DNA of 64,000 bases from Malacoraja senta. Lineage: Eukaryota. Positions 6,701 through 48,170 of the stretch are shown here, piece after piece. The notes under the pieces were generated by a model, which saw only the letters and a list, made by a program, of their open reading frames with translations, did not search any database and had not been told where the DNA came from. The translations under genes and the position numbers were made by a program. How positions within the stretch are numbered: position 1 is the first letter of the stretch; each line of letters begins with the position of its first letter. The stretch is taken from assembly GCA_038087875.1 (NCBI GenBank), contig JAXLNO010005343.1:62001-126000 (forward strand). The letters are read 5' to 3'.

Positions 6701-8672
6701 GTCGATCATAACTTCTTTGTCTTGCTTTCATGAAGGGAACGGTTATGCCATGATATAAGAAAACGTATATGTCCAGAGTTCCTTAGTCCTTGTAATATAC
6801 GGATTTCCATGGATTATTGGGATTCGGGCATTGATTGACAACTAGCACACAAGGATGTGACAATACTATAGTATAAACCCTCTAATTCAGGTCAGTACTT
6901 TCAACTACTTTAGGCAATTACAAATCCAGGTCATTACTTTCAACTGTGGCACCCGCCTTGCATATACAGTAGCTTGAAGCACCGTGTACGTAAAGCAGGA
7001 CTGGGCCTCTTTGCTTTCTGATTACATTCCATTTGGATATCCGTGGAGTCTCCAGTTACCTTCAGGTTTCGCGTCCCCATGTAGTAAAGCAGTTCAGACT
7101 ACAATGACCAAAAGTCTTATGCAAGTACATTGGAGTATCTAGGAAGATAAAAAAATAACTAACAGTGAGATACTGATTTCCCTGCATCCCAGCAAACTTT
7201 GCCAGGCTATTTTTATATAATCACAACTCATACAATTAGCTATTCTTCACAGAGAATTCACCATACTCAAATATAGAATATGGTATTAGGAACCGGTATT
7301 CGTTGTCGTATATTTCGCAAACGATTATCTTGCCAATATCATATTCCAAATAACCATGCAGTTTATTCCGCTGTTTTCTAAATCCTCCCGTATTTGGAGC
7401 AATTGGATTGCTTATATGAACTGATAACTTGATAGTAATTAATCGCTGTACTCCTTTATTAGCAATCAAACAGCTTTGCGCAAATTGTAGAAGCAGGTGT
7501 CCGTACAACCCCTGTGAATTCTTCATCGACGTTTACATAGTTTAACCTGTATACATGCACTCTCCCCTCCGCTTGCATCCACTCCCCGACACTAAACTAC
7601 ACTAACCGTGCCTGTATCACTGCCGGGACAACCAAATTATGAAGTATTGGCTCTTGCTTGATGTCCTCCATGCTTAGCAATTTTTAGCACGTATTTCTGC
7701 ATTTCCAGCGAGCAGTTTCATCGGTATATGTGTTACGGCGGTGAACGCTATTTCTGCTTGGAAACCCTGTAATAGTCGGTCCAAACCCCACCATCTGGGC
7801 CACAAATCTCCAGCTATCTGTTTCACCGTGCCCGCCCACCGCCATCCTCGTCGGTTATGGGTTTATACAAAACCGGTTGATCAAACCGATGTAACACTGA
7901 GAGCTTTTCAGTGGTGGCGAAAGCAGAAACGCCGACAACAGAAGAACAAATGCCTCAGGAGCAGCGGTGAAACAATTTATGGTGGCTTCCTGTTCAACTC
8001 GAAGCAGTTACCCCAGCAATCTCTGTTGAATAGCGAATACCTCCCTCTGTTAAGAACTTCAAGAATGTGTTATCTATTTATTTGCTAAACTATAGACCAA
8101 TGGATCTCCCCCTTCTCATCTGAAATGATTTCGCAGATTTTTCTGCTGAAATGACGCAAACTTCCGCTATCATTGCACAACAGTGTACCGATGTTTTTGC
8201 AGACTAACTGAGCAAAATGAGGAATTTTCTCTTCATCCTGTGCGAAAGATCAACCTGAATTCAGTATGGAGAGCAGGGGAATTTCAAAAATCTGGATTAG
8301 TGCTTAAATGTCCTTATCATAGCTTGTGTTAGCATAAGGACTCGCCGATTACTGGGGTGGAAGCGATAAGGTATGAAATGGGCGGTGCGGTAAGGGGAGG
8401 GGAGGGGAGCGGTGGGTCGTGGTCAGGGATGGTAGAGATCCGGAATGATGACGTTTAGATGGCGGAATGGGACTGCAAGGGTTGGGGTTTGTAAAATCAG
8501 TGGTTTGATTGGGGAGGCGGAGAGTCAATTAAGCCCAACTAGATGCAAAACGCAGGTTTTTAGAGCTCATCTACGTTATATTTGTTTGGTGTATTGCTTT
8601 CTCTTCATTCAGTGAAATAGTCCACAGCCGATTGTGCTGCTGTTGACAGCAATGCAAGTAAAAGTAAGTCTC

Positions 8673-8719
8673 ACCACATCGACAAGAGCCGCGCTGCAGT
8701 CACAGAAGGAGTGACGTGC
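8673..8719 (+). promoter_or_regulatory. Candidate proximal promoter motifs of gene A (RUNX site, CRE-like decamer)
   Basis: ACCACA at 8673-8678 and AGTGACGTGC at 8710-8719, 70-120 nt upstream of the leader ATG. Motif match only. Confidence 0.3.
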
Positions 8720-8789
8720 TTCATCGTCTGACAATTCAACCTTCAGAAACGTTTACTGCTCCACACGCCCTGTGATCACTTGCTGCGGA

Positions 8790-8844
8790 ATGTTGTCCAG
8801 CATTGCACTTCGCTGTTTCTCTTTTTGGGGGATAATTTTCACAG
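8790..8844 (+). CDS. Gene A exon 1: signal peptide MLSSIALRCFSFWGIIFT(G)
   Basis: ATG at 8790, hydrophobic 18-aa leader, phase-1 donor G|gtacat. The 161-nt intron ends in ...ttttctttcctttag, in frame with the V exon. Confidence 0.82.
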
Positions 8845-9005
8845 GTACATGGCATCCCCATAAACCCTTTATACAGACTAAAATCTACATCTATTCAATG
8901 GTTCTTTAATGCGTGACTTTATTTCCATTTGCAATTAGCCCTGCTCCTGCGTTTAACCTTCTGGGGTGAAATATTCCTAATCGGGCCTGTTTTTCTTTCC
9001 TTTAG

Positions 9006-9326
9006 GTAATGGGAAAACTGCAGACAAAGTAACTCAAGTTCCTCAAGCAGTGAATGTCTCGACGGGCCAAAATGCTTCGTTTCACTGCTCTGTTCCCTTC
9101 TTTCGTGAAGGGCCCAGCGTAAGCGTACATTGGTGGAAACAGGGTGAAAATGTTTTTTTCATCCCAGACCCTGACGGGAGAACGGTTTCCGGCGTCGGTA
9201 CTAAATTCAGTGGCTTCCTGAAAATAGTCAATGTGAGCCGACAGGATGCCGGAGTATATTATTGTACCATCACCCTCTGTGGCACTTTAGTTGGCAACGG
9301 AACCGGGTCGACTTTAGTTGTGTTGG
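9006..9326 (+). CDS. Gene A exon 2: germline-joined V(J)-type Ig domain
   Basis: KVTQVP...NASFHC...VHWWKQ...[17 protein letters not shown]...[11 protein letters not shown]. Has the canonical B-strand Cys, C-strand Trp, DxGxYYC and a J-like GxGSTLxV. Strong acceptor, donor G|gtaagt, phase 1-1. Confidence 0.93.
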
Positions 9327-9994
9327 GTAAGTAGGTTTAAACGTGTAACGAATGCGATTTCGCGACTGTGATATTGCCCTGCAAGTAACGTGTTTTTTCA
9401 GATTTGAATCATTCATACAGCCAGATGAATACTATAAATATTGCAATTGGTAAATCATACCATAGATGGTCTGCATGCTGATATGTATAAACAATACGTT
9501 TTAGCGATATTAATCAAAACGTATCTTATGTATTGGAAGTTTATTTCCAAAGCACAGCATAACATTAGTACAATACAGGTACCATTGTAGTGCCCGTTGT
9601 GAATACGGAAAAGACATGTGCAACTGTCGTAGTGGGTGACCCCATATGATGTACCATTTCGCCTGCGTTAGATCAAGAGGACTGTTTGTTTTTATATTGG
9701 ACGTTAGAGTCATTCAATTGTAACCGTGGCCTCCACATGAATAAGTTTGGACGCTAATGTTGCGAACGTAAAATAGCGAAGAATCGGAACCCAAATTTCC
9801 CTCAACATTTCAAATGACCTGCATGGTGTTCCGCACCTACCACCTAAAATTCTCATATCACGACTAAATTACAATTTTCAGAATTGTTTAATCACAATGT
9901 TTGCAAATGATCGGGGAAATAGTCGGCAGCAGAACATTTACATGTTTGGCATTTACCCGAGACGGCAGTGTTGCAAGAATGTACCATCATGTTG

Positions 9995-10845
9995 TGGGAA
10001 CTGCAGATGCTGGTTTAAACCGAAGACACAAAATGCTGGCGTCATTCAGCGGGACAGGCAGCATCTCTGGATAGAAGGAATGGGTGACGTTTCGGGTCGA
10101 GACCCTTCTTCACACTGTCAGGGGAGACGGAGATACAGAAATAAGGAAATGTATGGTGTGAAAACGAGACAAAGGGGATGGCGATCAGGGGAAATGTAGA
10201 ATATATCATTGTTAGCTAGGAAAAGGGAACAATAAAGTAAACAGAGATGAAATGTAAACGAGGACAGTCAGACTAGTCGGAGAATTGGGTAGAGGATGGA
10301 TGGAGAGAGAGCGAAGGCAAGGGTTACTTGAAATTATAGGTCAATATTCATACCGCTGGGGTGTAAGCTGCCCAAACGAATTACGAGGTATTGTTCCTCC
10401 AATTTGCGCTGGGCCTCACTTTGACAATGGAGGAGGCCCAGGACAAAAAGATCAGTGTGGGAATGGGAGGGGGAGTTAAAGTGTTGGCTAGTGGTAGGAT
10501 CCCGTTAGAGGTGGCGAAAATGCCGGAGAATTATGTGCTGTATGCGACGGCTGTTGGGGAGAACGGTGAGGACTAGGGGGACTACGTCCCTGTTGCGACT
10601 GGGGGAGGGGGAGCAAGCGCGGAGCTGCGGGACATCGAGGAGACCCCAGTGAGGGCATCGTTTATGATGGAAGGGAGGAATCCCTGTTTCCTATTGAATG
10701 AAGACATCTCAGATGTCCTGGTATGGAACACCTCATCTTGGGCGCAGAAGCGGCGTAGACGGAGGAATTGGGAGTCGGAGAAGAGTCTCTACAGGACGCA
10801 GGGTGGGATACACATTTACCATCATGTTTTTCTTCACTAGACAGC
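9995..10845 (-). mobile_element. Penelope-like element fragment in the gene A V-C1 intron
   Basis: A minus frame reads SQFLRLRRFCAQDEVFHTRTSEM (PLE RT C-terminus). It ends in the recurrent PLE terminal repeat (cgacccgaaacgtcacc...ccagagatgctgcc). Confidence 0.75.
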
Positions 10846-11005
10846 ACGAGTAAACGTTATCTCTGATTTAAATTCGGGTATAAAGGTTCCGTTTACATTA
10901 TTATAAATGCACAACGAACGCGCGAATCCGCCTCACAGAAACCATTCACAGTCCGCGCACTCATTTTGTACTAATATAACCGTATCACTAACCTTCATTC
11001 CCTAG

Positions 11006-11311
11006 TTCCGCCAACTCCGTTGAAAATTTATTCTGGAATTCCCGAGAAGACGGAATCCTTCGTTATTCTCTGCGTGACATCTCCCTTTTACCCAAAGAAT
11101 ATCAGCTTCATGTGGTATCAAGATGGTAGAAAAACTACAACGGATTTGGTTAATAGCAACAAGCCCACCGCAGATGGATTGTATGAAGCTTCCAGCCGAT
11201 TATCAGTGACACAGTATGTCCCGAGCGGCACCGTTTACACCTGCCTTGTGAATCATGTAACCCACCGTGTTCCTGCAGCAGCCACTTACGTTGTCATCAA
11301 CTCCGACACAG
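11006..11311 (+). CDS. Gene A exon 3: C1-set Ig domain
   Basis: (V)PPTPLKIY...[21 protein letters not shown]...[12 protein letters not shown]...YTCLVNH shows the C1 hallmarks CxxxxFYPxxIxxxW, DGxY and YxCxVxH. Acceptor cattccctag, donor G|gtaaga, phase 1-1. Confidence 0.93.
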
Positions 11312-12699
11312 GTAAGACCGGTAAGATCTCTATTACCATAGAAAGATACGTAAAGTTGGAGATTTCACAAAATGTCGCATGATAGGAATTACTGTTATTC
11401 CTGGCCTGAAACTATAAACCTTGAAGATCCGTCTATTATAATCGCATCCGCTCGATTTCCATGTGGCTGCAAATGTTCTCATCAAGTACACGCAAAATTG
11501 TCTTTTGACAAATTCATTGGGAGCTACTACCTCCAGCATGTCAGGCGCTGCACTCCGAATCTCAAGAAAGCTATTCCCACAAATGTCCTCGATACGGTAT
11601 AACCGCTGGTTTCCCCTTTTCTTCAGCGGAAATAGATTGTGTTTAATTGCCCCAGTAAAGCATCTCCCGTGACCAATTGCTCTTCATTTCTGCCAAACGA
11701 GAAGACCCCAAACTTCTCCCAACTCTTCACTGAACCGGGCACAATGATCTCATCTATCATTCTAGCAAACAACCTGTGCATAGACCTAAATTAAAAAGTA
11801 GTGATTTTCAAGCATTTGCCACGGTATGGTGTCCCTTGCTTCATCCATGAGGGCTAAAAGTTCCACGATCTGCCTTAAATCTTTTATCAGCTTCCCAGAA
11901 TTGTGTAATATGTTTTCCTCTTTCCCGTATGCTTCCAAATTCCTCAAAATATAAGCATATCTTGGCTCATTTGTCCAGTCTAACAACGACCTCCTCACGT
12001 CTCCTGTTTTTTTTATGTAGGATAACAGCACTCCCGTAACAAACACAGAAACAATTCCCCGCCACCGCGAGGGTCAATTGTTTGATTCTAAACAAAATGC
12101 CGTGATCCCGATATCCGACTAATATATCTCGGTCTGCCGCTCTGTCTCTACTGCCGGATGAGTCAACGCAGAAGTGTAAGATGGATACATGAGCTAGTAT
12201 CCGCTCCTTGCCGAGAGGCCACGGAGCTGAAACGCTGTCTCTCATTCGCTGAACATGACATAACTTCCTACAGATCAGAAACGTTGCCAATAATTTAAAG
12301 CTAGAAATAAAGTAACACGCTGAAAATATCCTCATTGACATTCCTGAATTTTAAAGCGGATATCATTTGTGAGTCGGACAGACGGTTTGCTGTCTCCGAT
12401 TTAATCAGAAGTATCTCTCATATTGAACTTTCATTTTAATAAGAATACGCGAACACCAGTTCGTTTTTTAAAGCTGTTGTTCTCGTAGTAAAGTATGAAA
12501 ACTATTATTTCTCGCTTATAAGAATAGGTTCATAAAATGACGCCTGAAAGCATGTTTTATTTTTTGACATATAATATAGAACCGTACACCACAGGATCAG
12601 ACATTTCGTCCCGCACGTGATGCAAGTTAAAATAATGTCCTCTCCCTTTTGGTGATCTATTTCCTTACACACTCTGCATCTCAATGTACCTGTACGAAA

Positions 12700-14420
12700 G
12701 ACTCTTAAAGCCCACGTTCCCTTCTGCTTCCAACACCACCATCACCTGGCAACGTTTTCCCGGCACTCACCAGTTTCTGTATAAAAACAACTTGCCCCAC
12801 ACATCTCTAATCTTATAGTTATGCCCTCGATTCTATTACATTTTAACCCTGGGAAAAGGTTTCTGACTATTTCTCCTAACCATGTCCCTCATAATCCTAT
12901 ATACTTGTATCTCCCCACAATTTCCGATGCCCCAGAAAAAAAATCCGAAGTTGGCCAATCTCTCTTGATGGCCAATATCCTCTCATGCAGCCAGCATTCT
13001 GGTAAAGTCATAGAGCACGGGAACAGACTGTACTGTCCAACATGCCCATGCCGACCTAGATGCCTGATCTACACAAGTTCCACCTGCCTGCATGCATCTC
13101 TCATCCTTCTTACCGTGTCCAATATATGTAGCTGTCGAAATATCTTTTAAATGGTGTTTTAGTAAATCTGTTCTGCACCCTGTGAAAAGTCTCCACATTC
13201 TTGCCGCATTGGGTGACCAAAACGGCACACAACACGCGGCCTATCCATAGTGTTTTAAAGCTGTAACATGGCTCCCTCTCAGCACATGGCTCTAGCACTC
13301 AGTGCCACAACCGACGAAGGGAAGTATACCAAATGCATTCTTTACAATTCTATCATTTTGTGTTTGCATTCTTAAGGAGCTGTATCTTTAGACCCAAGTT
13401 CCAACAATACATCAGTGCTGTGGAAAGTCTTGCAAAGCGTAACAGCACACACTTGCTCCGATTAAACTGCATTTGCCATTTCTATGCACACATCTGCAAT
13501 TATACCTTTCCCCGTTTAGACGGTGAGGGGCATAGTGTCAATGATGTTGACAGGCTGGAATTTGTCAAATATGTTCAGGACAATATCCTTAGCCAGTACG
13601 TGTATGGCACTACAAGGGGGAGGACAAAGCTTGCCCTAATCATTGGAATTGGGAAATTGGCAAGTGACTGAAGATGGTTATCAACAATTGAAACAGGATG
13701 TTGATCTGTTGGGCAGGTAGGCTGAGGAATGGTTAATGGAGTTTTATACCAGTAAGTGAGAGGTGTTGCATTTTCTGAGGTCAAATAGTGTTAGGACCAA
13801 AACAGTGTAAGGCAGGGCTCTATGGAGTGATGGGGAGCAGACGGATGTAGGAGTGCAGGTACTTACTTCCTTGAGAATGTTGTCACATGTAGATAGGGTG
13901 AGCAAGAAGGCATTCGGCACAGTGGCCTTCATCATTCAGAATATTGAGTATAGAAGTTAGGAGGTCGTGTTACAATTGTACAGGACATTGGGGAGGCAAC
14001 ATTTGGAGTATTGTGTTCAGTTATGGCCATCCTGTTACAGGAATGATGCTGTTCAGCTGTAAAGGGTGCAGAGAAGATTTGCGAGGAAGTTAACAGGACT
14101 CGAGAGCCTGAGTTATAGGGAGTGATTGAGCAGGCTCAGACTTTATTCCTTGTGCTGCAGGAGGATGAGGGGTGATCTTATTGAAGTTCTTCGCATTAGG
14201 GGAACAGATAGGGTAAATGCACAGTATTTTTCTCAGAGGAGGGGAATCAAAAAAAGAGGGCAAAAATAAATCTGGACCGGTGCATGGATAGGATAGTTTT
14301 AGAAGGTCATGGACCAAATGGCAGGCAAGTGGAACTAGTGTAGATGAGCTATATTGGTCCGCGTGGGCAAGTTAGGCAGAAGGGCCTGTTTCCATATTGA
14401 ATTACTCTTTGACTACACAA
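12700..14420. mobile_element. Two adjacent degraded CR1 fragments (minus ~12700-13300, plus ~13330-14420)
   Basis: CR1 C-terminal motifs: RPxLEYCVQxW...RVQxRF-like text (13990-14090 on plus) and VETFHRVQNRFTK on minus. Confidence 0.7.
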
Positions 14421-15348
14421 ATGTTGGTGGGTGAACATCAGGGACCAGTAACCACAGTTCTATTTGCTTGAAAATAGTTTTGAATCAACACAGGGTTAGT
14501 CCACAAGGTTAAAGTCCGAAGCTGGTGCAAGGTCAACTTTGATGGTATTAGACAGGAATTTACAAACGTTTGGTGGAGGCTTGGAGCAGACCCAACCAGG
14601 GGTCTGAAAAAGAGTCCCGACTCATAACGTCACCCATCCATGTTCTGCAGAGATGCTGATTGACCAGCAGAGTTAATCCAGCACTTTGTATCATTTTAAC
14701 TTACAACTGTTGAGTTGAGTAGGTTATTAGCGGCCAAAGCAGCTTCGGGAAAATTGAATGCTCTTCAAAGTCCAATGGCGAGAGTTCTAAGCATGCATGT
14801 CCATGCTAAAGTAATAGGTAAGACAAATGGGAGTAAGGGAGCCCAGATGACATGCAAATTTGGGTCTCTGGTCAGGAAAAAAGGAGGTATGTGCCAGTTA
14901 TAGGCAGCTGGGATTAAATGTATGCCTTGAAGGTTTTGGGGACTGAGGAGCATAGTTAAGAAGCAAATCAAACGGGCAAAAAAAAGGCAATGGATAATTC
15001 TAGCAAATAATATTAAGGAAAATATGAAGACATTTCGTGAGTACATTAAGGGAAAAAGGTAACTGGACAGTGATATAAAACCTGCTGTAACCTTTGACAA
15101 CCTTTCTCCCAACTCCATCAATTTTATTAAATTTAATTCGACCATTAGGCAAATCTATTTACATTTTCGCCAGATTCGCTTTCGGAAAACTTAAATCTGT
15201 CACTTTTATTTGTTTGCTTTGCACAAATGTTCAAATTATTAGTAGATTTCTGAGCTTGCAGCGTATTACATCAGATTCAAGGGAGAGGGATTTTCCGATT
15301 TCAGGAGGTACGATATTCATATGTATCTTATGCATTTCAATCTTACAG

Positions 15349-15442
15349 GTACTAACATCGTCAATTGTGTCAGGATAATGTGCGGTTTAGTACTACTGCC
15401 TCTTCTCATTGCAACGTGTTGTATTGCAAGAAAAAAATAAAG
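15349..15442 (+). CDS. Gene A candidate TM exon [30 protein letters not shown]
   Basis: Phase-1 acceptor (catttcaatcttacag). Hydrophobic run with Arg at its N-terminal edge and basic stop-transfer RKK. In-frame TAA at 15438-15440, then a donor ag|gtaaag at 15443. Confidence 0.55.
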
Positions 15443-17308
15443 GTAAAGAATAATTTAACCCAATTAAGTATTTTGTTCAGAGGGCTATAGCTTTAGAAAG
15501 AGGGGCGCGTGATCTCTCTGTTCTTGGGCAAAATAGCTTCATTTTTCTTGTCATCACGGTCGACAAAGCCATTGTGGGCCGAGGGGCCTTTTCCTATGCT
15601 GTGTATTTATGTTTTATGTTACAACGAGTGGTCGCCCTATTCCTTCTGCGAAATTTCATTACCTTGCTTGAAAGTATTCATATTCGCCATTCCGCCCATT
15701 TTTAGTACACTAATATCCTACTGTAATGTTCTGTTCCCCTCAGTACTGAAGATCTCGTCCAATTATGTGTCACCCTTACTTCAGAAATCAGGTTTGATTC
15801 TGGTTCGAACAATCTGCAGTTCTGGAAGCAACACAACTGCGCCCATTGCTTTCTGTGAGCAGTTGCAGTTTAGTCTGCTTTCTTTCCCGCAGCCAGCCAT
15901 GAATCGATCTGAAACCTGTCACTAATTACGTATTCTCAGATCGTTTTTCGTGTGTCCTATGTCGCCAACCTATCTGCCATTCCTCTGGAAATCTAAGTTT
16001 ATATTTGTTTTCATTATCATAGCCATGCCTCTCCGTATTTGCTTACTGCCACGTCAAATTATATGAGTCCCAGCAATCGGGAGAGATTGCTAACTGGAGA
16101 TTCTATTTAGTTACCAGCGGCCTGGCTCTCGAAAAACACTGAGTAGAATTAAAAGGCTAGCGACGTCAGCATATTAATATCGATTCGGGATAAAGCCATG
16201 TATTTGCATATGATCGTCTCCATCAATCTATATTAAGCACTTTTGTTCATCGATCTATGAGAACCTCTTTTTTCGGGTGACAAAATGCCATTTTTGTAAC
16301 TTGAGAAGTAATTAGTATTATTAATTTACCAGATACCCAGAAGGAAGGAGAAATATATAATATTAATGGTATGTACTCAAAATCCATGGAATTGTTTCGG
16401 AAATCTAAAATAATATATTATACAAAATTAGCAGTCGAGCCGATTGGACAAAAATGAAGCATGAACCTAAAAAGAACTGTCAGTAGTGTGCGATGCATTT
16501 AATTGCCATCAGATCAATCTGAAGTAACATTTCACATTTACACGCCATGAAAGAAGTAAAGTTAAAATATCTGTGTTTGCCTTCAATACAACGGAAATTA
16601 GTTAGCAGTATCGTTGATGCCACTACCTCTCGGTAGCAGCCGTTCAAAGGGTTTTGTATGTTAACACGAATGCTAGATGAAAACCCATCTTGCCAAGATG
16701 ACATATTGCACTCACTTTTAAAAATTCGTGCCTCTTGTCAACAAAATGTCTAAGGTCTTTTAAATGCTCGTACCTCCACAGCAAAATCATGAATGTCTAC
16801 CACGGATGCATATCTACCGTTTTCGCTTGGCACGCACTGCATGCCCAGTAATTACCATGTGAAGCCTCGAAGACGGACGTCCAATCAGTACAGAATAAAG
16901 CTGCCCTCTATTTGCGCCTAGAGCGAAACCCCAATGCACCCGCAATCATCTCAGTGGACCTTCTCTGAACTGTGTCGTGTAACTTTCTAGCGGAGAGCGA
17001 CACTATCAGGCTCTAAAATGGATACAAACGAAAGTGTTCCTTTCTTTTAGTAAGCGCATTGAAACAGGACGTCTTTGCTGCCTTGCACAGACTGACAACC
17101 ACTTGGAAACAGGATTTTGATGTGAAATGAAATGAAAAATCGAGTTCACTATTATTTCCGTTCAATCAGTTGGCTGCAATTTGCTTCTTTGCGTTTGCAA
17201 ATGCTAAGATAAAGCAAATACGTTTACGAAGATAATATAGGTCATTTAGGGCTAGGAAGCCTTCCCCCGCCATATCCACACTGCGATTTATTTAGCTAAT
17301 CAGATCTA

Positions 17309-18906
17309 CAGTGCCCTCCATAATGTTTTGGACAAAGACCCATCACTCATTTATTTGCCGCTGTACTCCACAATTTGAGATTTGTAACAGAAAAAAAAAT
17401 CACATGTGGTTAAAGTGCACATTGTCAGATTTTAATAAAGTGCATTTTAATCATTTTTGTTTCACCGTGTAGGAATTACAGCAGTGTTTATACATAGTTC
17501 CCTCCCCCCATTACAGGGCACCATAATGAAAGTAGTCATGTTTAGTATTTTGTTGCATATCCTTTGCATGCAATGACTGCTTGAAGTCTGCGATTCATGG
17601 ACATCACCAGTTGCTGGGTGTCTTCTCTGGCGATGCCCTGCCAGGCCTGCATTACAGTTATCTCTAGCTTATGCTTGTTTTGGGGGCTAGTACCCATCAG
17701 TTTTCTCTTCAGCATATAAAAGACATGCTCAATTTGGTTCAGATCGGGTGATTGACTTGGCCACTCAAGAATTGACACATTTTTAGCTTTGAAAAACTGC
17801 TTAGTCGCTTTAGCAGTATGTTTGGGGTCATTGGATTGCTGTGAATGAACGCCGGCCAATGAGTTTTGATGCATTTGTTTGAAATTGAGCAGATAGGATG
17901 TGTCTATACACTTGAGAATTCATTATGCTACCACCATCAGCAGTTGTATCATCAATGAAGATAAGTGAGCCAATACCTTCAGCAGCCATATATGCCCAGG
18001 CCATAACACCCCCACCACCATGTTTCACAAATGAGGTGGTATGCATCAGATCTTGGGCAGTTCCTTCTCTCCTCCATACTTTGCTCTTGCCATCATTCGA
18101 ATATGTTAATCTTCGACTCATCTGTCCACAAGACCCATTTCCAGAACTGCGGTTGCTCTTTTAAGTACTTCTTGGCAAACTGTAACCTGGCCATCCTGTT
18201 TTTGCGGCTAACCAGTGGTTTGCATCTTGCAGTGTAGCCTCTGTATTTTTGTTCATGAAGGCTTCCGCGGAGAGTGGTCATTGACAAATCCACACCTGAC
18301 TCATGAAGAGTGTTTCTGATCTGTCGGACGGGTGTTTGGGGATTTTTCTTTATTATAGAGAAAATTCTTCTCTCACCAGCTTCCATGGCCTGTCTGTCCC
18401 TTTGCGATTATTAAGCTCAAAAGTGCACTCTTTCTTCTTAATGATGTTCTAAACAGTTGATTTTGGTAAGCCTACGGTTTGGCTGATGCCGCTAACATTT
18501 TAATTCGTGTTTCTCAGTCTCATAATGGCTTCTTTGACTTTCATTGGCACATTTTCGGTCCTCATGTTGATAAGCGGCAATAAACGTTTTCAAAGGTGAT
18601 GGAAAGACTGGAGGATAGACTAGATGCTGAGCACCCCCTTAAACACACCTGAGCAATTGCAAACGCCTGTGAAGCCATGTGTCCCAAACATTATGGTGCC
18701 ATGAAATGGGGGGACTATGTTTAAACCCAGCTGTAATTTCTACATGGTGAAACCAAAATGTATAAAAATGGCCTTTAATAAAACCTGACAATATGCACTT
18801 TAACCACACGTGATTTTTTTTTAAATTACAAATCTCAAATTGTGCAGTACAGAGGCAAATAAATAAATGATGGGTCTTTGTCTCAAACATTAAGGGGGGG
18901 GCACTA
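17309..18906 (-). mobile_element. Tc1/mariner DNA transposon, near full length, defective; long IR/DR-type TIRs
   Basis: ~220-bp inverted repeats at 17309-~17528 and ~18682-18906, with TA to the left. The transposase is split over three frames (18386-17542): TDESK, QQSNDPKH (catalytic D replaced by S) and SPDLNQIEH. Confidence 0.92.
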
Positions 18907-19097
18907 TTACTCGCTTTTTTTTTGGTACTGTTGGAGCATCAGAAGTGATAGACACTTTTATTCATGTAATAGGCCGTCGAATCTGTTTTAGAGCATGATT
19001 GTGTCGTTCTCCGCAAGAATCAATTCACCTCTGTTTCGAAGATGCATACTTTCCTCGTTTAGTCTATGGAATGTGCAGGTGAAGCGAGTGTGCCTTA

Positions 19098-19238
19098 TTT
19101 TTAGTTTAGATTAGTTTCGTTTAGTTTCGTTTAGTTTCGTTTAGTTTAGTTTAGTTTAGATTAGTTGCGTTTAGTTTAGTTTAGTTTAGATGCGTTTAGT
19201 TTAGTTTAGTTTAGTTTAGTTTAGTTTAGATTAGTTTA
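19098..19238 (+). repeat. (TTTAG)n pentanucleotide microsatellite with TTTCG/GATTA variants, tail of a minus-strand SINE
   Basis: Directly visible tandem array abutting the SINE sequence gatacaacgcagaaaaaggccc. Confidence 0.9.
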
Positions 19239-19754
19239 GAGATACAACGCAGAAAAAGGCCCTTTGGCCCACCGAGTCCATGCCGACCAACGATGCCCGC
19301 ACACTTACCATATCCTACACAAAGTAGGAACAGTTTTACAATTATACCAAGCCAATTAACCTACAAACCTGTACGTCTTTGGACTGTGGCACCCGGTCTC
19401 GGGCGCTGTGTGGCAGCAACTCTAACGTTGCGCCAACGTGCCGCCCCAAATCTGCGCAAAATCTGAGCAAATCCAGGATAATTCCAATGCCGGTCAATCA
19501 AGAAAGGACAGGTACACATATATGAACGCATTCAGGCTAGATATCGGCACCTCCGCCCTTCGGCATGCTTCGGCGTACAATAAGGTGTTGATTGGCCTTA
19601 GCTCTGCGTTTACCATTGCCAACCTAACGATTGACGGCTTTACTTATTTAATACATATATCATCTCCTGACAGAAAATATAAAGTGGAGAAAAAAGTCAA
19701 ATTCTTGTCCTTGCACATAATGTATCAAAAATATTTATATGGCAAAGTTAGACA

Positions 19755-20104
19755 CAAGATGCTGGAGAAACTCAGCGGGTCAGGCAGCATCTCTGGAGAA
19801 AATGGATGTGACGTTTCGGGTCCGGACCCTTCTTCAGACTGAATCCAGCAGGGAGAGTAGAGGGAAAAATGGAAAGCGAAGTAAATTAGGAAAAGTCGGG
19901 GCCAGCAACAGATGACCTCAGGTAAACTGGTTTCCCGATGGGCTGACTGTTGGCCAGGGGCGGGTGTGAGTCGAAGAGGGATACATAGTCGAATTCGGTA
20001 AACAACCTCTAGTGGAGGACGGGGGGGGGGTGAGGAGAGAAGGGGAGGGAGGTGTAGCGAGGTGTTGACGGCCTTGATTTGTCCTGTTTTTTCTTCGCCT
20101 CCAG
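19755..20104 (-). mobile_element. Penelope-like terminal repeat/fragment running into the gap
   Basis: Same PLE terminal motif as at ~10018-10110. Confidence 0.6.
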
Positions 20105-20302
20105 NNNNNNNNNNNNNNNNNNNNNNNNNNNNNNNNNNNNNNNNNNNNNNNNNNNNNNNNNNNNNNNNNNNNNNNNNNNNNNNNNNNNNNNNNNNNNNNN
20201 NNNNNNNNNNNNNNNNNNNNNNNNNNNNNNNNNNNNNNNNNNNNNNNNNNNNNNNNNNNNNNNNNNNNNNNNNNNNNNNNNNNNNNNNNNNNNNNNNNNN
20301 NN
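20105..20302. other. Assembly gap (N run)
   Basis: Run of N characters. Confidence 0.99.
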
Positions 20303-20680
20303 ACGAGTATGACTGTCCTCTTTTGGGAGGACGCCTGTGCCTGACTTAGTTTAACGTGGGGAGACTCGTGCACAGACAGCCACCACACGGTTCTTGACAG
20401 ATCTGGGTCAGGATCCATTGCCATAGAGTCCAAGACGACCGTAGACTCTTTTCTGCTGCAGCTTTCATCCGCCTTCCCAGCCGTTGTGACGCTCCACTAA
20501 AGTCAGCCATCATCCTCTGCCTTTTCCACCGTTGCGGTCTTGGTTGGATTGCTCCTTGTCAGGGACCTTCCCCTCGACCTTACCGCCATGGGTGGCCCAA
20601 CCATGAGCATAGCTCCAGACGGCATCGCTCTTAGGATCTCAGGACCACACAAGCGTCTCCGCCACGACAAGGTAACAATC
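20303..20680 (+). mobile_element. Probable RTE-like retrotransposon 5' region fragment
   Basis: ...ctccagacggcatcgctcttaggatc...ccgccacgacaaggtaacaatcc recalls vertebrate RTE 5' sequence. Recognition from memory only. Confidence 0.35.
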
Positions 20681-22249
20681 CACATACACACACTCTCACA
20701 CAAACACACACACACACACAATCAGACTTAAGAAGGGTCCCGACCCCAAGAGTCACCTGTCCATTTTCGTCAGAATGCTGCCTGACCCTCTGACTCACTC
20801 GAGCACTTTGTGTCTCTTTGGTATAAACCAGTATATGCCGTTCATTTATGTTACTTTTAGTTGGCAGCCTGTTGTAATAATCTCTGATTTTGCGATGCTC
20901 TCGTGGCTGCATGAGATTTAAAGCAACTTAAAAAATGAACTAATATTCTTTCCATTAAATTTTCATCTCGTAGACCAAGCAGAAACCAATGCATGCTAAA
21001 GTGATCTACGCTCCGTTCGTTACGGTAGGAAACACGAAAAGAGAGCAAACAATTGTACGGATAATGACACTGACAGCTAATAAAGCAAATGCGAGGTGCA
21101 GATGTTATCTATTCAGAATGGAATCCCAAGTAGTGTCCGTGCTCAAATTGATGTCTTGTTATTTGTGTGATTACTTATCAAGTCCATTCTCTGACAAAAA
21201 GCATCAACAACCCTCAGAGAAAGGGCGAGATGTACTATATTACAAGCATGGCGCACTGATTTTACGTCAAAATTCCTAACCAACATTTCACCTTCAACAC
21301 TTGGGGTGAAATGGGTTGCAAATGATTGCCCAAGTTATGTTCAAGAAAGTTTCGGTGTCCATGCGTTTAGCAACTGTGCTCCCTGTCTTTGCATATGTTT
21401 GGTAAAGGTAGGCACCTAAATTATAATTTCTGTAAAATAATATGCACTTTCATGCGTGTGTTTACCGCATTCTTTCCAGTCGCTTTGCAATCGCTGAATG
21501 TTTGAAGTGTACGGACAGATTAAAAACAAACATGATCAGAAATGTGAAAACTGTACATCATATGAATAAAAATCGATACGGTCAGAGACGAAACCAATCC
21601 GTCTTGACTCGGTTGGGGAAAAATAAACATAGTTTAGTTTAATTTAATATTGTCACATATATAGTGGAACGCCTTTTGTTGCATGCTATCAGTCAAAGAA
21701 AAGACTATACATGAGTATTATCAAGCCGTCCACAGTGTACCATTAAAGGATAACAAACTACAAATATCATTAAATGGGAAGGGCTGGAACGTTGGGATTC
21801 CGAAATCTGTAATATTGTAAGGGTCGTTGTGCACGGAATAAATGCTCCGCGGGTATGGCTGGATCCGTAAAATCGGTAATAAAGTAAGCATATCAATTTC
21901 TTGGCCTTATTTCAGAACAGCAGGAGAGTAGAGAAGCACAGGTGTTCATGCAAGTACAGAAGCAGTGAATAGGAAGTGGAGGGTTAAAGGACTAAAGCAG
22001 AGACTGGCGATACGGTGTGTAGCCAACCGAAAGACAAAGCAATTGATAATAATATGATCAAACTCTATTCCTTAAAGATATAGAAGAAACAATGAACGGC
22101 AGATGTTGGTTTAACAAGGAAGACAAAATGCTTGAGTATATCAGCGGGCCGGATAGCATTCCTGGAAAACTTGTGATAGGTGACGCTTCAGGTCAAGACC
22201 CTTCAGATTAATGACGTTTCGGGTCGGGACCCTTTCACCTGGAATATCT

Positions 22250-26147: not shown

Positions 26148-27130
26148 ATAGAAACATAGAAACATAGACAATAGGTGCAGGAGTATGCCATTTGGCCCTT
26201 CGAGCCCGCACCGCCATTCAATATGATCATGGCTGATCATCCAACTCAGTATCCCGTACCTGCCTTCTCTCCATACCCCCTGACCCCCTTAGCCACAAGG
26301 GCCACATCTAACTCCCTCTTAAATATAGCCAATGAACTGGCCTCAACTACCTTCGGTGGCAGAGAATTCCACAGATTCGCCACTCTCTGTGTGAAAAATG
26401 TTTTTCTCATCTCGGTCCTAAAAGACTTCCCCCTTATCCTTAAACTGTGACCCCTTGTTCTGGACTTCCCCAACATCGGGAACTATCTTCCTGTATCTAG
26501 CTTGTCCAACCCCTTAAGAATTTTGTAAGTTTCAATAAGACCCCCCCTCAATCTTCTAAATTCTAGCGAGTACAAGCCGAGTCTATCCAGTCATTCTTCA
26601 TATGAAAGTTTTGACATCCCAGAAATCAGTCTGGTGAACCTTCTCTGTATTCTCTCTATGGCAAGAATGTCTTTCCTCAGATTAGGAGACCAAAACTGTA
26701 CGCAATACTCCAGGTGTGGTCTCACCAAGACCCTGTACAACTGCAGTAGAACCTCCCTGCTCCTAACATACCATTCGCTTTCTTCACTTCCTGCTGCACC
26801 TGCATGCCTACTTTCAATGACTGGTGTACCATGACACCCAGGTCTCGTCGCATCTCCCTTTTTCCTAATCGGCCACCATTCAGATAACAGTCTACTTTCC
26901 CGTTTTTGCCACCAAAGTGGATAACCTCACATTTATCCACATTATACTGCATCTGCCATGCATTTGCCCACTCACCCAACCTATCCAAGTCACCTTGCAG
27001 CCTCCTAGCATCATCCTCACAGCTAACATTGCCCCCCAGCTTCGTGTCATCCGCAAACTTGGAGATGTTGCATTCAATTCCCTCGTTCAAATCATTGATA
27101 TATATTGTAAATAGCTGGGGTCCCAGCACC
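26148..27130 (-). mobile_element. CR1 (HER1-like) LINE 3' portion, young
   Basis: ORF 26722-27129 LGPQLFTIYINDL...KFADDTKLGG, C-terminal TRGHSLRIRG...FFTQRV, and an (atagaaac)n terminal repeat. Confidence 0.92.
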
Positions 27131-30497: not shown

Positions 30498-30608
30498 ACA
30501 ATTCAATTCCAATGTGATCCAAAGTTAACATATACTACTCTAAACATCACTGGTCTAGAGATATCTACTAAATCCAGATACTTTGAAGAAAGCACGATAT
30601 ATGCCCAG
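30498..30608 (+). CDS. Orphan cytoplasmic ITIM exon TIQFQCDPKLTYTTLNITGLEISTKSRYFEESTIYAQ (probably gene A)
   Basis: Acceptor gataactttcag, open 111-nt phase 0-0 frame, perfect donor CAG|gtaagt. It contains LTYTTL and ends in TIYAQ|. The Tyr-Tyr spacing of 23 aa and the YxQ| junction match gene B exon 39319-39405. Confidence 0.7.
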
Positions 30609-30696: not shown

Positions 30697-33420
30697 ACAT
30701 AGATACATAGATACATAGAAAATAGGTGCAGGAATAGGCCATTCGGCCCTTCGCGCCAGCACCGCTGTTCACTGATCATCCACAATCAGTTCTCCGTTCG
30801 TGCCTCCTCCCCATATCCCTTGATTACACGTCCTAAGAGTTCAATCCAACTCTCTTTTGAATGCATGCAGTATGCAGTGAATCGGCCCCCACTGCCTTCT
30901 GAGACAGAGCATTCCACAAATTCACAGCCCCATGGGTGAAAAAGCTTTTCCGCATCTCAGTTCAAAATGGCCTACCCCTTATTCTTAAATTGTGGCCCCT
31001 GGTTCTGGACTCCCCCCAACATCGGGAACATGTTTCTTGCATCTAGCGTGTCCAATCCGTTAATAATTGTATACGTTTCTAGACGATACCCTCTCATCCT
31101 TCTAAATTCCAGAGAATACATGCCCAGTAGCTCCATTCTTTCATCACATGGCAGTCACGCCATCTGTTAACATTGTGAACCTATGCTGCATTCCCTCAAT
31201 AGAAAGAATGTCCTTCCTCAAATTAGGAGACCGAAACTGCACACAATACTCCAGGTGTGGTCTCTCTAAGGTCCTGTACAACTGCAGAACGACCTCTTTG
31301 CTCCTATACTCAACTCCTCTCGTTATGAAGGCCAACATGCCATTAGATGTATTCACTGCCTGCTGTACCTGCATGCTTACCTATAGTGACTGATGAACAA
31401 GGACCCCCAGGTCCAGTTGTACTTCCGCTTTTCCTAACCTGACACCATTCAGATAATAATCTGCCTTCCTGTTCTTGCCACCAAAGTGGATAACCTCACA
31501 TTTATCCACATTATATTGCATTTGCCATGCTTCTGCCCACTCACCCAACCTGTCCAAGTCACCCCACGTCCTCATAGCATCCTCTTCACAGTTCGCACTG
31601 CCACCCAGACTTGTGTCATCTGCAAATTTGCTAATGTTACTTTTAATTCCTTCATCTAAGTCAATAATATATATTGTAAATAGCTGCGGTCCCAGCACCA
31701 AGCCTTGTGACTTCCCACTAGTCACTGCCTGCCATTCTAAAAGGCGCCCATTAATTCCTACTCTTTGTTTCCTGGCCGCCAACCAATTTTCTATCCATGT
31801 CAATACCCTACCCCGAATACCATGTGGTCTAATTTTGCCCACTAATCTCCTGTGTGGGACCTTATCAAAGGCATTCTGAAAGCCCAGGTACACTACATCC
31901 ACTGGCTCTTCCATGAACATTCTACTTGTTATATCCTCAAATAATTCCAGAAGATTAGTCAAGCATGATTTCCCCTTCGTAAATCCATGCTGACTTGGAA
32001 GGATCCTGTCACTGCTATCCAAATGCGCCGCTATTACGTATTTAGTAAATCGACTTCAGGATCTTCCCCACCACCGATGTCAGGCTAACGTCTATAATTC
32101 CATGATTTTTCTCTCCCTCCTTCTTAAAATGTGGGATAACATTAGCTACCCTTCAATCCACAGGATCTGACCCAGAATCTATAAAACATTGGATAATTAT
32201 CACCAATGCGTCCACAATTTCTAGAGCCACCTGCTCGGGTACCCTGGGATGCAGACCATCAGGCTCTGGGGATATATCAGCATTCAGTCCCATCAGTCTA
32301 CCCAACACCATTATCTGACTAATGTGAATTTCTTTCAGTTCCTCCATCACCGTAGGTGCTCTGTCCCCTATTGCATCCGGGAGATTGTTTGTGTCTTCCT
32401 TAGTGAAGACAGAACCAAAATATCTGTTCAACTCGTCTGCCATTTCCTTGTTCCCCATAATAAATTCACATGTTTCTGTCTTCAAGGGACCCACATTTGT
32501 CTGATATAATGTTTTCCTCTTCACATACCTAAAGATTGTTTTACTATCCTCCTTTATATTCTTGGCTAGCTTACCTTCGTACCTCATTTTTCTCCTAGTA
32601 TTGCCTTTTTAGTTACCTCCGTTGATCTTTAAAAGTTTCCCAATCCTTTGGCCTTCCGCTCATCTAAACTATGTTATACGTCTTATCTTTTATTTTTATA
32701 CTGTCCTTGACTTCCCTTGTCAAACATGGGCGCCTCTTACTCCCCTTAGAATCGTTCTTCCTCATTGGAATGAAAAGATCCTGCATTATCTGGATAATTC
32801 CCTGAAATACCTGCCATTGATGTTCCACTGTCATCCCTGCTAGGGTCCCTTTCCAGCCAACTTCGGCCAGCTCCTCCCTCATGCTTCCATAGTCCCCTTT
32901 CTTCAACTGCAATACTGACACTTCCAATTTTACCATCTCCCTCTCAAATTGCAGATTGAAACTTATCTTATTATGGTCACTACCTCGTAATGGTTCTTTT
33001 ATCTTGAGTTCCTTTATCAAATTCGGTTCATTACACAACACTAAATCCAGAATTGCCTTCTCCCTGGTTAGCTCCAGTACAAGCTGCTTTAAGAATCCAT
33101 CTCGGAGGTACTCTACAAATTCACTTTCTTGGGGTCCAGTGCCAACCTGATTTTCCCAGTCAACCTGCATGTTAAAATCTCCCATAACCACCGTAGCATT
33201 ACCTATTGTTACATGCCAATTTTAACTCCTGATGCAACTTGAACCCTATATCCAGGCTACTGTTTGGGGGCCTGTAGATAACTACCATTAGGGTATTTTT
33301 ACCCTTACAATTTCTCAGTTCTATCCACAATGTCTCTGCACCTTCTGATTCTATGTAACCCCTCGCAAGTGACTGAATGTCATTCCTTACGAACAGTGCT
33401 ACCCCACCCCCTCTGCCCAC
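30697..33420 (-). mobile_element. CR1 LINE ORF2 (endonuclease plus RT), frameshifted
   Basis: ORFs 32664-33191 (VMGDFN...ILDLVL), 32153-32587, 31381-32022 (QHGFTKGKSCLTNL...KFADDT) and 31144-31374. (atagatac)n tail at 30697-30722. Confidence 0.93.
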
Positions 33421-41437: not shown

Positions 41438-42109
41438 CTAGTAGAGAACATAATAAAACGACCAAATTTAATCATCAACGTATCACAACCTGCCTGCCGA
41501 TAGTCAGTTAATAATCGAGTTGTGACCAGATTCGTTCGGCTGCAGAAATTGACCATTGCGATCATGCTATTCTTGTTATTTGAACAAATCCTCTCCTCGT
41601 AAGTCATAATGCTAAGGAAAAGCACACGGAAAAGTTGAAACCCTATGGTTTGCTTCCGCTTTCCTGTGATAACTGCCCCTATTTAAACAACCCGACCTTT
41701 GCAGCATTTCACCCAGTGTTTAAAAGAGCCTTCTTTTTAGAACAAACGACAACTATGCTTTTGCAACCAACGGCTTAAACCGGTTAACATTTTGTTTCCC
41801 ACAGAATGCTGCGGTCGGGGAAATGCCATGTTGTTTAAATCTATCGTTATCTCAGCACTCCTCGTTGCTCCTTCAACTGAACATTGCCATTTTCGGTAAA
41901 AACACGAAGGGCTGTAGTAATTCAGCGGGTTAGGAAGCATCTACGGGGGGCATCGATGCCGAAGTTTCAAATGTGACTCAACCCCAAAAGTTCCCTATCC
42001 ATTGTATCCCCAGATGCTGCCAAACCGCTGAGTTACTCAAGCACTTTGCGTTTTGCATCTGCAGTTCCTTGTGTCGCTAATTTCGGACAAGAATCAACTA
42101 ATTTCTTAC

Positions 42110-47888: not shown

Positions 47889-48170
47889 CCATTCCAAGAA
47901 TTCTGTGAGTTTCAACGGTCGGAACCAGGAGGGTGACGTGAGACACATTGCAACTATAAACCGATCGGCTATCCACTACTTGCAGGAAGCTGGAAGCAAG
48001 GTATAATCCCTCGTCGTTCCGTATTTTAGTGGTACTTATTCCAGAAGTGATTTCGTGGTCATCTTTATACCAGGTAAGTTCACAGTCCTTCGGGAAAAAC
48101 GGAGCAGTTGTACAGTTTAGTGCCAGGGAAGGAGTGTTCATCTGTTTAATCTTCAAAGGCGTCGGTGACA
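47889..48170 (-). CDS. Gene B C1-set Ig domain exon
   Basis: (V)SPTPLKI...LNCTTAPFFPKDCELTWYKD...EGLYLASSFL...YSCNVSH. Acceptor aattgtttgcag, donor G|gtatga, 282 nt, phase 1-1. Confidence 0.92.

Follow-up and report, generated by a model that had tools for sequence, protein, structure and literature searches.

Can the length of a single adenine run decide whether an immune receptor belongs to the activating or to the inhibitory class? This question is raised by gene A, a plus-strand gene for a V-C1 receptor that lies in a 64,000-nucleotide (nt) stretch of the skate Malacoraja senta (contig JAXLNO010005343.1, positions 62,001 to 126,000), hereafter called the window. The membrane exon of gene A encodes an arginine within its helix and closes on a run of seven adenines (A7), directly followed by a TAA stop codon that stands just before the splice donor. 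A sequence-only reading of this DNA had proposed that the run toggles between a tailless activating-type receptor and a receptor with an ITIM (immunoreceptor tyrosine-based inhibitory motif), or else that it reflects an assembly indel or a null allele. From a comparison with the orthologous loci of two other skates, we consider it probable that A7 is a derived one-base gain that trimmed a dispensable tail from an activating-type receptor and left its signalling class unchanged.

The A7 run makes the stop codon of the membrane exon

The elements at the end of the membrane exon are the following.

15349..15442, plus strand: 94-nt membrane exon of gene A with a phase-1 start; ends ARKK-TAA-AG before a GT donor
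15372..15374, plus strand: AGG codon of the Arg, in the membrane helix's outer third; its 10-residue context is identical in the Leucoraja erinacea and Amblyraja radiata orthologues
15431..15437, plus strand: A7 homopolymer; six adenines (A6) in the orthologues by alignment
15438..15440, plus strand: TAA stop made by the extra A, followed by 2 nt (AG) and then the donor

The exon is flanked by an acceptor AG at 15347-15348 and a donor GT at 15443-15444 (ag/gtaaag, where the slash marks the exon boundary, here and below). When we re-read the sequence, the coordinates, the frame, the TAA, and the donor were all as claimed, and the run does decide the stop. The frame arithmetic proposed for other run lengths was also correct: A6 ends the exon with ARKNK in phase 1, A7 with ARKK and a stop, and A8 with ARKKIK in phase 0. 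The classification of the exon as an Arg-containing membrane exon of the activating type likewise held, the Arg being kept in all three skates. The A7 run by itself is ordinary, as the window contains 22 runs of at least seven adenines; it is the position in the exon that gives it meaning.

The ancestral exon has six adenines and ends in phase 1

With the C1 exon of gene A as query, a full HMMER search retrieved two orthologues that are 90% identical, XP_055505064.1 (L. erinacea) and XP_032892405.1 (A. radiata), and both carry the automatic RefSeq label [quoted passage not shown] (SIRP-alpha-like). We compared the window with the corresponding loci, L001 for L. erinacea and L002 for A. radiata (from CM021382.1). 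Positions 7813-17497 of the window are collinear with L002 17992-27571 at 90% identity, and the orthologous membrane exons lie at about L001 22807-22914 and about L002 25390-25497. The exon ends compare as follows.

L. erinacea orthologue: GCAAG AAAAAA TAAAG/GTAAAG; A6; ARKNK, phase 1
A. radiata orthologue: GCAAG AAAAAA TAAAG/GTAAAG; A6; ARKNK, phase 1
Gene A of the window: one A more, A7; ARKK, stop
A. radiata inhibitory paralogue (L002 ~47929-48069): GCAAGGAAAATTAAAG/GT; A6 length; CIARKIK, phase 1

Over the final 30 nt of this exon, the extra A is the sole length difference between the window and its orthologues. Ray and shark relatives end the exon in CITRKNK/G, CLSKKNK/G, or CVAKKNN/G. 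The exon end of the family can be written (R/K)K(N/I)(K/N) with a phase-1 junction, and gene A of the window departs from it with RKK and then a stop. Because the orthologues, the paralogue, and the shark and ray relatives all end in this way, the ancestral state is the A6 length in phase 1. Judged from this alignment, A7 is a derived +1 insertion, predicted to shorten a 12-residue tail to 3 residues. We rejected a reading of the A. radiata paralogue in which its CIARKIK end would be a phase-0, A8-like end, since the DNA alignment shows phase 1 and the A6 length.

The sequence-only reading had pointed to related skates and rays for comparison. In both skates compared, L. erinacea and A. radiata, the exon has A6, and that of the window is one A longer, a difference that is seen between species only.

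The A. radiata locus also contains a tandem pair (L002:13295-55500). Both copies contain V and C1; the membrane exon of copy 1 (~25.4 kb) encodes the Arg, and that of copy 2 (~48 kb) is uncharged and comes with an intact ITIM tail. Between the C1 exons of the two copies, the synonymous divergence (dS) is 0, which suggests gene conversion and a homogenised paired-receptor ectodomain. The model XP_032892405.1 merges both copies as V-C1-C1.

The added stop would remove nine residues without a motif

Downstream of the membrane exon, the last part of the transcript is predicted to include two elements.

20974..20999, plus strand: terminal exon, with acceptor AG at 20972-20973; in phase 1, (G)AC.. 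reads DQAETNAC and a stop
21079..21084, plus strand: AATAAA, a candidate polyadenylation signal 80 nt past the phase-1 stop, presumably the one used

The L. erinacea protein XP_055505064.1 continues from the membrane exon as ARKNK/DQAETDAC and stops, its last exon lying at L001 27755-27780. The three skates all keep this terminal exon, with the identical acceptor tcatctcgtag in each. The tail thus compares as RKK in the window versus RKNKDQAET(N/D)AC in the orthologues (RKNKDQAETNAC for the A6 form), and there is no tyrosine in either. The part that the A6 form has in addition amounts to 9 residues and contains neither a tyrosine nor an ITIM. As predicted from the two exons, the choice is between 12 and 3 residues: both tail forms are short, the Arg is kept, and a motif is found in neither.

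With A7, exon 20974 is predicted to be 3' untranslated sequence. Because the stop is located 2 nt before the last junction, the message would be expected to escape nonsense-mediated decay under the 50-55 nt rule. The proposal of a null allele is unlikely, as the stop costs 9 tail residues only. Another candidate exon, at 15744-15791, was rejected: it is unused in the L. erinacea model, and the surrounding region has only intron-level identity (~86%).

The terminal exon is homologous to an ITIM exon

When read in phase 0, the terminal exon gives TKQKPMHAKVIYAPF, whose homologue is the ITIM exon that inhibitory relatives carry (TKQ..xxYAxx). Counterparts of this ITIM exon are found in Mobula (TKQRPPNKNVTYAPI) and, intact, in A. 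radiata copy 2 (L002 55311-55481). Two traces of an ITIM tail were located in the window.

21001..21018, plus strand: ITIM-like VIYAPF in the phase-0 reading; VIYAPL in the other two skates
19445..19510, plus strand: relic of the first ITIM exon, PKSAQNLSKSRIIPMPVNQERT versus PYAALDLTKSRKVPGPVNQERT; both tyrosines lost; tblastn with the tail of a relative, E=1.5e-4

Past VIYAP, the phase-0 frame is broken by a 1-nt deletion common to the three skates, and the window has lost 7 nt more. Because the frameshift is common to all three species, the phase-0 frame is not maintained. The relic of the first ITIM exon (PKSAQNL...VNQERT) is present in L. erinacea too, at L001 26773-26838 and 33051-33116. 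Since the terminal exon is an old ITIM exon and the first ITIM exon persists as a relic without tyrosines, gene A would derive from an inhibitory ancestor.

A related arrangement occurs in the horn shark Heterodontus francisci, in which one gene has two RefSeq isoforms, XP_067905932.1 and XP_067905933.1. Isoform X1 reads KKNK/GVQNDGERCDYPEQK/TNHRSPGNKLTYAAL, with a small exon that begins GVQND and a long ITIM tail, and isoform X2 omits the small exon and reads KKNK/DQPQVTG and a stop. The codons of TNHRSPGN moved by one base spell DQPQVTG-stop exactly. Judging from these two models, the horn shark appears to use the out-of-frame reading of the ITIM exon as an alternative isoform; an exact look-up of the short isoform returned no match.

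Together, the comparisons lead us to propose the following course of events. Cartilaginous fish would have a SIRP-like family of paired V-C1 receptors, of which gene A is the activating-type member, with a membrane Arg and a near-absent tail, and gene A would presumably couple to an adaptor with an immunoreceptor tyrosine-based activation motif (ITAM). Its lineage would go back to an inhibitory ancestor and would have seen the decay of the small cytoplasmic exons. The phase-1 membrane exon would have become joined directly to the former ITIM exon, which is then read with a shift of one base and stops after 8 codons. The ancestral end would have been AGA AAA AAT AAA G/gt (A6), giving the tail RKNKDQAET(N/D)AC. 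Replication slippage would then have added one A in the lineage of the window, or in the individual, to yield AGA AAA AAA TAA and the tail RKK. The mRNA would probably be spliced as before, the protein would stay membrane-anchored, and the truncation would be small and probably near-neutral.

Exon 30498 and the proposed switch by run length

The toggle of the sequence-only reading ran through an exon farther downstream.

30498..30608, plus strand: orphan exon resembling an ITIM exon or an immunoreceptor tyrosine-based switch motif (ITSM) exon; LTYTTL and TIYAQ in phase 0; good splice sites; same class as 20974

The protein encoded by exon 30498 is 33-37% identical to the second ITIM exon of the family. 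No DNA match to it was found in L001 or L002, and no following exon was detected. We rejected it as an exon of gene A, since it is of the same class as gene A's own exon 20974 and is without a match in the orthologous loci. On these comparisons it is judged a probable relic of another, decayed gene copy. Its phase-0 ITIM reading is as described earlier, but the exon is judged not to belong to gene A. The activating/ITIM toggle through exon 30498 finds no support in the splice pattern either: the junction is phase 1 across the family, and the A6 form is modelled as spliced to the small, motif-free terminal exon.

A switch could also operate without exon 30498, with polymorphic run length, or transcriptional or translational slippage, producing a tailless activating or an ITIM-bearing form from one gene. 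Three run lengths do lead to three ends, and A8 or A5 reads VIYAPF (VIYAPL in the other skates) through exon 20974. In addition, run length varies between species, A AAA AAA is a -1 slippery heptamer in the right register, and human KIR2DL4 shows that such polymorphism can exist (PMC3422731). However, A6 and A7 are the only lengths observed, and exon 30498 lies outside gene A. The phase-0 frame, with its 1-nt deletion in three skates and a 7-nt deletion in the window, has not been kept open by selection, and this dates back to before the divergence of these skates. A stimulatory RNA structure for programmed -1 frameshifting was looked for in the 50-90 nt of spliced downstream message and none was found, as this segment folds no better than shuffled sequences (z -0.2 to +1.0); ribosomal frameshifting at the A run was rejected because no stable structure lies downstream. 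We thus regard such a switch as very improbable. We give just as little credence to the A run as a frame selector that would draw three tails from one pair of exons, of 12 residues with A6, of 3 residues with A7, and ITIM-like, VIYAP(L/F), with A8 or A5. Given polymorphic run lengths in skate populations, or slippage of polymerases or ribosomes on the run, one gene could flip between activating and inhibitory signalling, which would be a convergent and more extreme version of the KIR2DL4 9A/10A system in the oldest jawed vertebrates.

Read evidence for the seventh adenine

A one-base difference in a homopolymer may also be an assembly or sequencing error, or a private or heterozygous allele, in which case the species would normally have A6 and the 12-residue tail. 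Consensus indels are commonest in homopolymers, and A6 is the length seen in both orthologues and in the paralogue. However, a de novo contig from X1, a public run of the same species (record 6), spans 14949-16689 with 0 differences, 0 gaps, and a word depth of 11.5, and a homopolymer of 7 bases is on the short side for systematic consensus errors. X1, the only run with an exact match to the region, may be the assembled sample, and contigs lose minor variants. We consider an error or a private allele unlikely, and so too the suggested assembly indel, as the X1 contig reproduces A7 without a gap.

Contigs of two related organisms span the membrane exon at ~92% identity. Exact look-ups of the two open frames that adjoin the run (39 and 138 amino acids) returned no matches among contigs of other individuals. 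The four public runs that we compared cover introns and are thus DNA-like, without splice junctions, and RNA runs were looked for in the public run searches and none was found.

Two further observations concern the same read sets. A second copy of 14949-15629, ~87% identical, is present in two samples of the organism (X1 record 7 and X11 record 20) at a relative depth of ~1:1 in X1 and ~1:4 in X11; an unplaced paralogue could account for it, as could a very divergent haplotype. The sole X1 contig over the C1 exon (10900-11363) has 6 differences from the window and a depth of 32, versus 16 in its neighbours.

Structure and condition of gene A

Upstream of the membrane exon, gene A comprises three exons.

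8790..8844, plus strand: leader exon, MLSSIALRCFSFWGIIFT, phase-1 end; ATG intact, 96-97% identical in L. erinacea and both A. radiata copies
9006..9326, plus strand: V exon, phase 1 at both ends; germline J-like strand; Pfam V-set, E=4e-10
11006..11311, plus strand: C1 exon, phase 1 to 1; Pfam C1-set, E=6e-13

The predicted product has 257 residues, and all junctions are in phase 1 with canonical splice sites. A J-like GxGTxLxV strand closes the single V exon, and a single C1 exon separates it from the membrane exon. At the DNA level the V exon is 94% identical to its orthologues and contains no stops, and the protein of the C1 exon is 90% identical to XP_055505064.1 and XP_032892405.1. No entry for the gene A protein of the window was found in the protein collection searched. 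Counterparts of the leader are located at L001:18391-18501 and at L002:18938-19048 and 41671-41780; both RefSeq models begin at other upstream exons and are probably wrong there.

These data bear on whether gene A is decaying in this lineage, the frameshift being one step of pseudogenisation. On the window branch, the ratio of nonsynonymous to synonymous divergence (dN/dS) of the V exon is ~1.1-1.5 versus the orthologues, an estimate that few changes underlie. Deletions specific to the window are found in the membrane exon (6 nt) and the terminal exon (7 nt). Moreover, the inhibitory twin known downstream in A. radiata is missing from the window, where the DNA comparison with that locus reveals no second copy after 29304. 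On the other side, an open frame and canonical splice sites are kept by each of the four coding exons, leader, V, and C1 included, and the Cys, Trp, and YYC residues of the immunoglobulin (Ig) fold are retained. The 6-nt deletion is in frame, the C1 dN/dS is ~0.5-0.66 versus the orthologues (again from few changes), and the stop takes off only 9 motif-free residues. The dN/dS values would be compatible with a fast-evolving immune receptor but also with early decay; overall, we find decay improbable.

Several points weigh against our preferred reading of A7 as a near-neutral trimming of an activating-type tail. The orthologous splice pattern comes from one computational RefSeq model, and the A. 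radiata model XP_032892405.1 omits the Arg exon. The V-exon dN/dS would fit relaxed constraint as well as diversifying selection. As X1 may be the assembled individual, its contig may not be an independent confirmation of A7, and contigs would mask a heterozygous A6. In this species, the use of the exons, the junction from 15442 to 20974, and expression are inferred from genomic sequence.

Gene B and neighbouring sequences

The window contains a distant paralogue, gene B, on the minus strand and tail to tail with gene A.

56768-56502, minus strand: V exon of gene B
48135-47896, minus strand: C1 exon of gene B
42220-42110, minus strand: membrane exon of gene B, with an uncharged helix and a phase-1 end, ARRCKLHSTE g/gt

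The tail of gene B spans two exons with four tyrosines. Transposon-like open frames, judged by eye from the translations of open reading frames (ORFs), occur at 31-2312, 17542-18386 (minus strand), 26722-27129 (minus strand), and 31381-33191 (minus strand). They include reverse-transcriptase-like ORFs of the long interspersed nuclear element (LINE) type, and broken ORFs in the last intron of gene A that we took for transposase of the Tc1/mariner type. The same intron holds a gap of Ns in the assembly at 20105-20302.

Significance

The locus offers a clean, datable case of a paired immune receptor whose signalling class depends on how its membrane exon ends. The anchor of the receptor, rich in Lys and Asn, has to be A-rich and is prone to slippage. 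This family of cartilaginous fish would make a tailless form through the out-of-frame ITIM exon, apparently as an isoform in the horn shark and as a fixed state in the gene A lineage of skates, and the species of the window would have trimmed the tail further by one A. Paired-receptor logic and tail truncation by a homopolymer, both familiar from primate KIR, would then already operate in the oldest jawed vertebrates. Annotators are cautioned against "correcting" the stop, which is probably genuine; for the animal, little practical effect is likely.

Comparison with known systems

Gene A resembles the SIRP-alpha/SIRP-beta pair in having a J-like V domain followed by a C1-set domain, and in belonging to a family with four-tyrosine inhibitory members and short-tailed activating members with a basic membrane residue. 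It differs from SIRP in having one C1 domain versus two and in the position of its Arg, high in the helix, whereas the Lys of SIRP-beta lies mid-membrane. The SIRP label of the skate orthologues comes from automatic annotation; the resemblance is one of logic, and orthology is only putative. A literature search on SIRP and cartilaginous fish found no description of a V-C1 receptor family.

For the C1 domain of gene A (11008-11310), the best sequence match in the PDB is shark UrIg2 V-C1-C2-C3 (9dmx_A, E=2.6e-17), ahead of Ig mu and of any SIRP. High-scoring relatives of this domain are found in skates, rays, sharks, and chimaera, the ray and shark proteins being 50-67% identical; many long multi-C1 proteins in a representative search may be UrIg2-like. 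Like UrIg and UrIg2, the non-rearranging VJ-C1 genes of elasmobranchs, gene A has a germline-joined VJ exon followed by C1-type sequence (PMC12227049). Gene A differs in its single C1 domain, as UrIg2 contains at least nine C domains, and paired activating and inhibitory forms are not described for UrIg2 in PMC12227049.

As in activating receptors of the KIR, LILRA, PIR-A, and CEACAM3 type, which arose from inhibitory ones through tail loss, the ectodomain is near-identical to that of an inhibitory neighbour (in the A. radiata copies), an Arg was gained, and the ITIM exons persist as relics. In contrast to that type, gene A would have lost its tail by out-of-frame splicing onto an old ITIM exon. 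With NKp46, LILRA, Fc-alpha-RI, and KIR2DL4, gene A shares a basic residue in the helix and a short tail without motifs.

The closest analogue is KIR2DL4 (CD158d). Its alleles have 9 or 10 adenines in the membrane exon and encode a receptor that is either truncated or full; an Arg close to the helix top pairs with the Fc receptor gamma chain (PMC3422731). In both genes, the length of a poly-A run in the membrane exon sets the tail and the Arg stands high in the helix. However, the long form of KIR2DL4 has an ITIM tail and both lengths occur in one population, whereas the long form of gene A has 12 residues and is free of motifs. The ectodomains are unrelated, D0-D2 in KIR2DL4 and V-C1 in gene A, and the resemblance between the two receptors is convergent.

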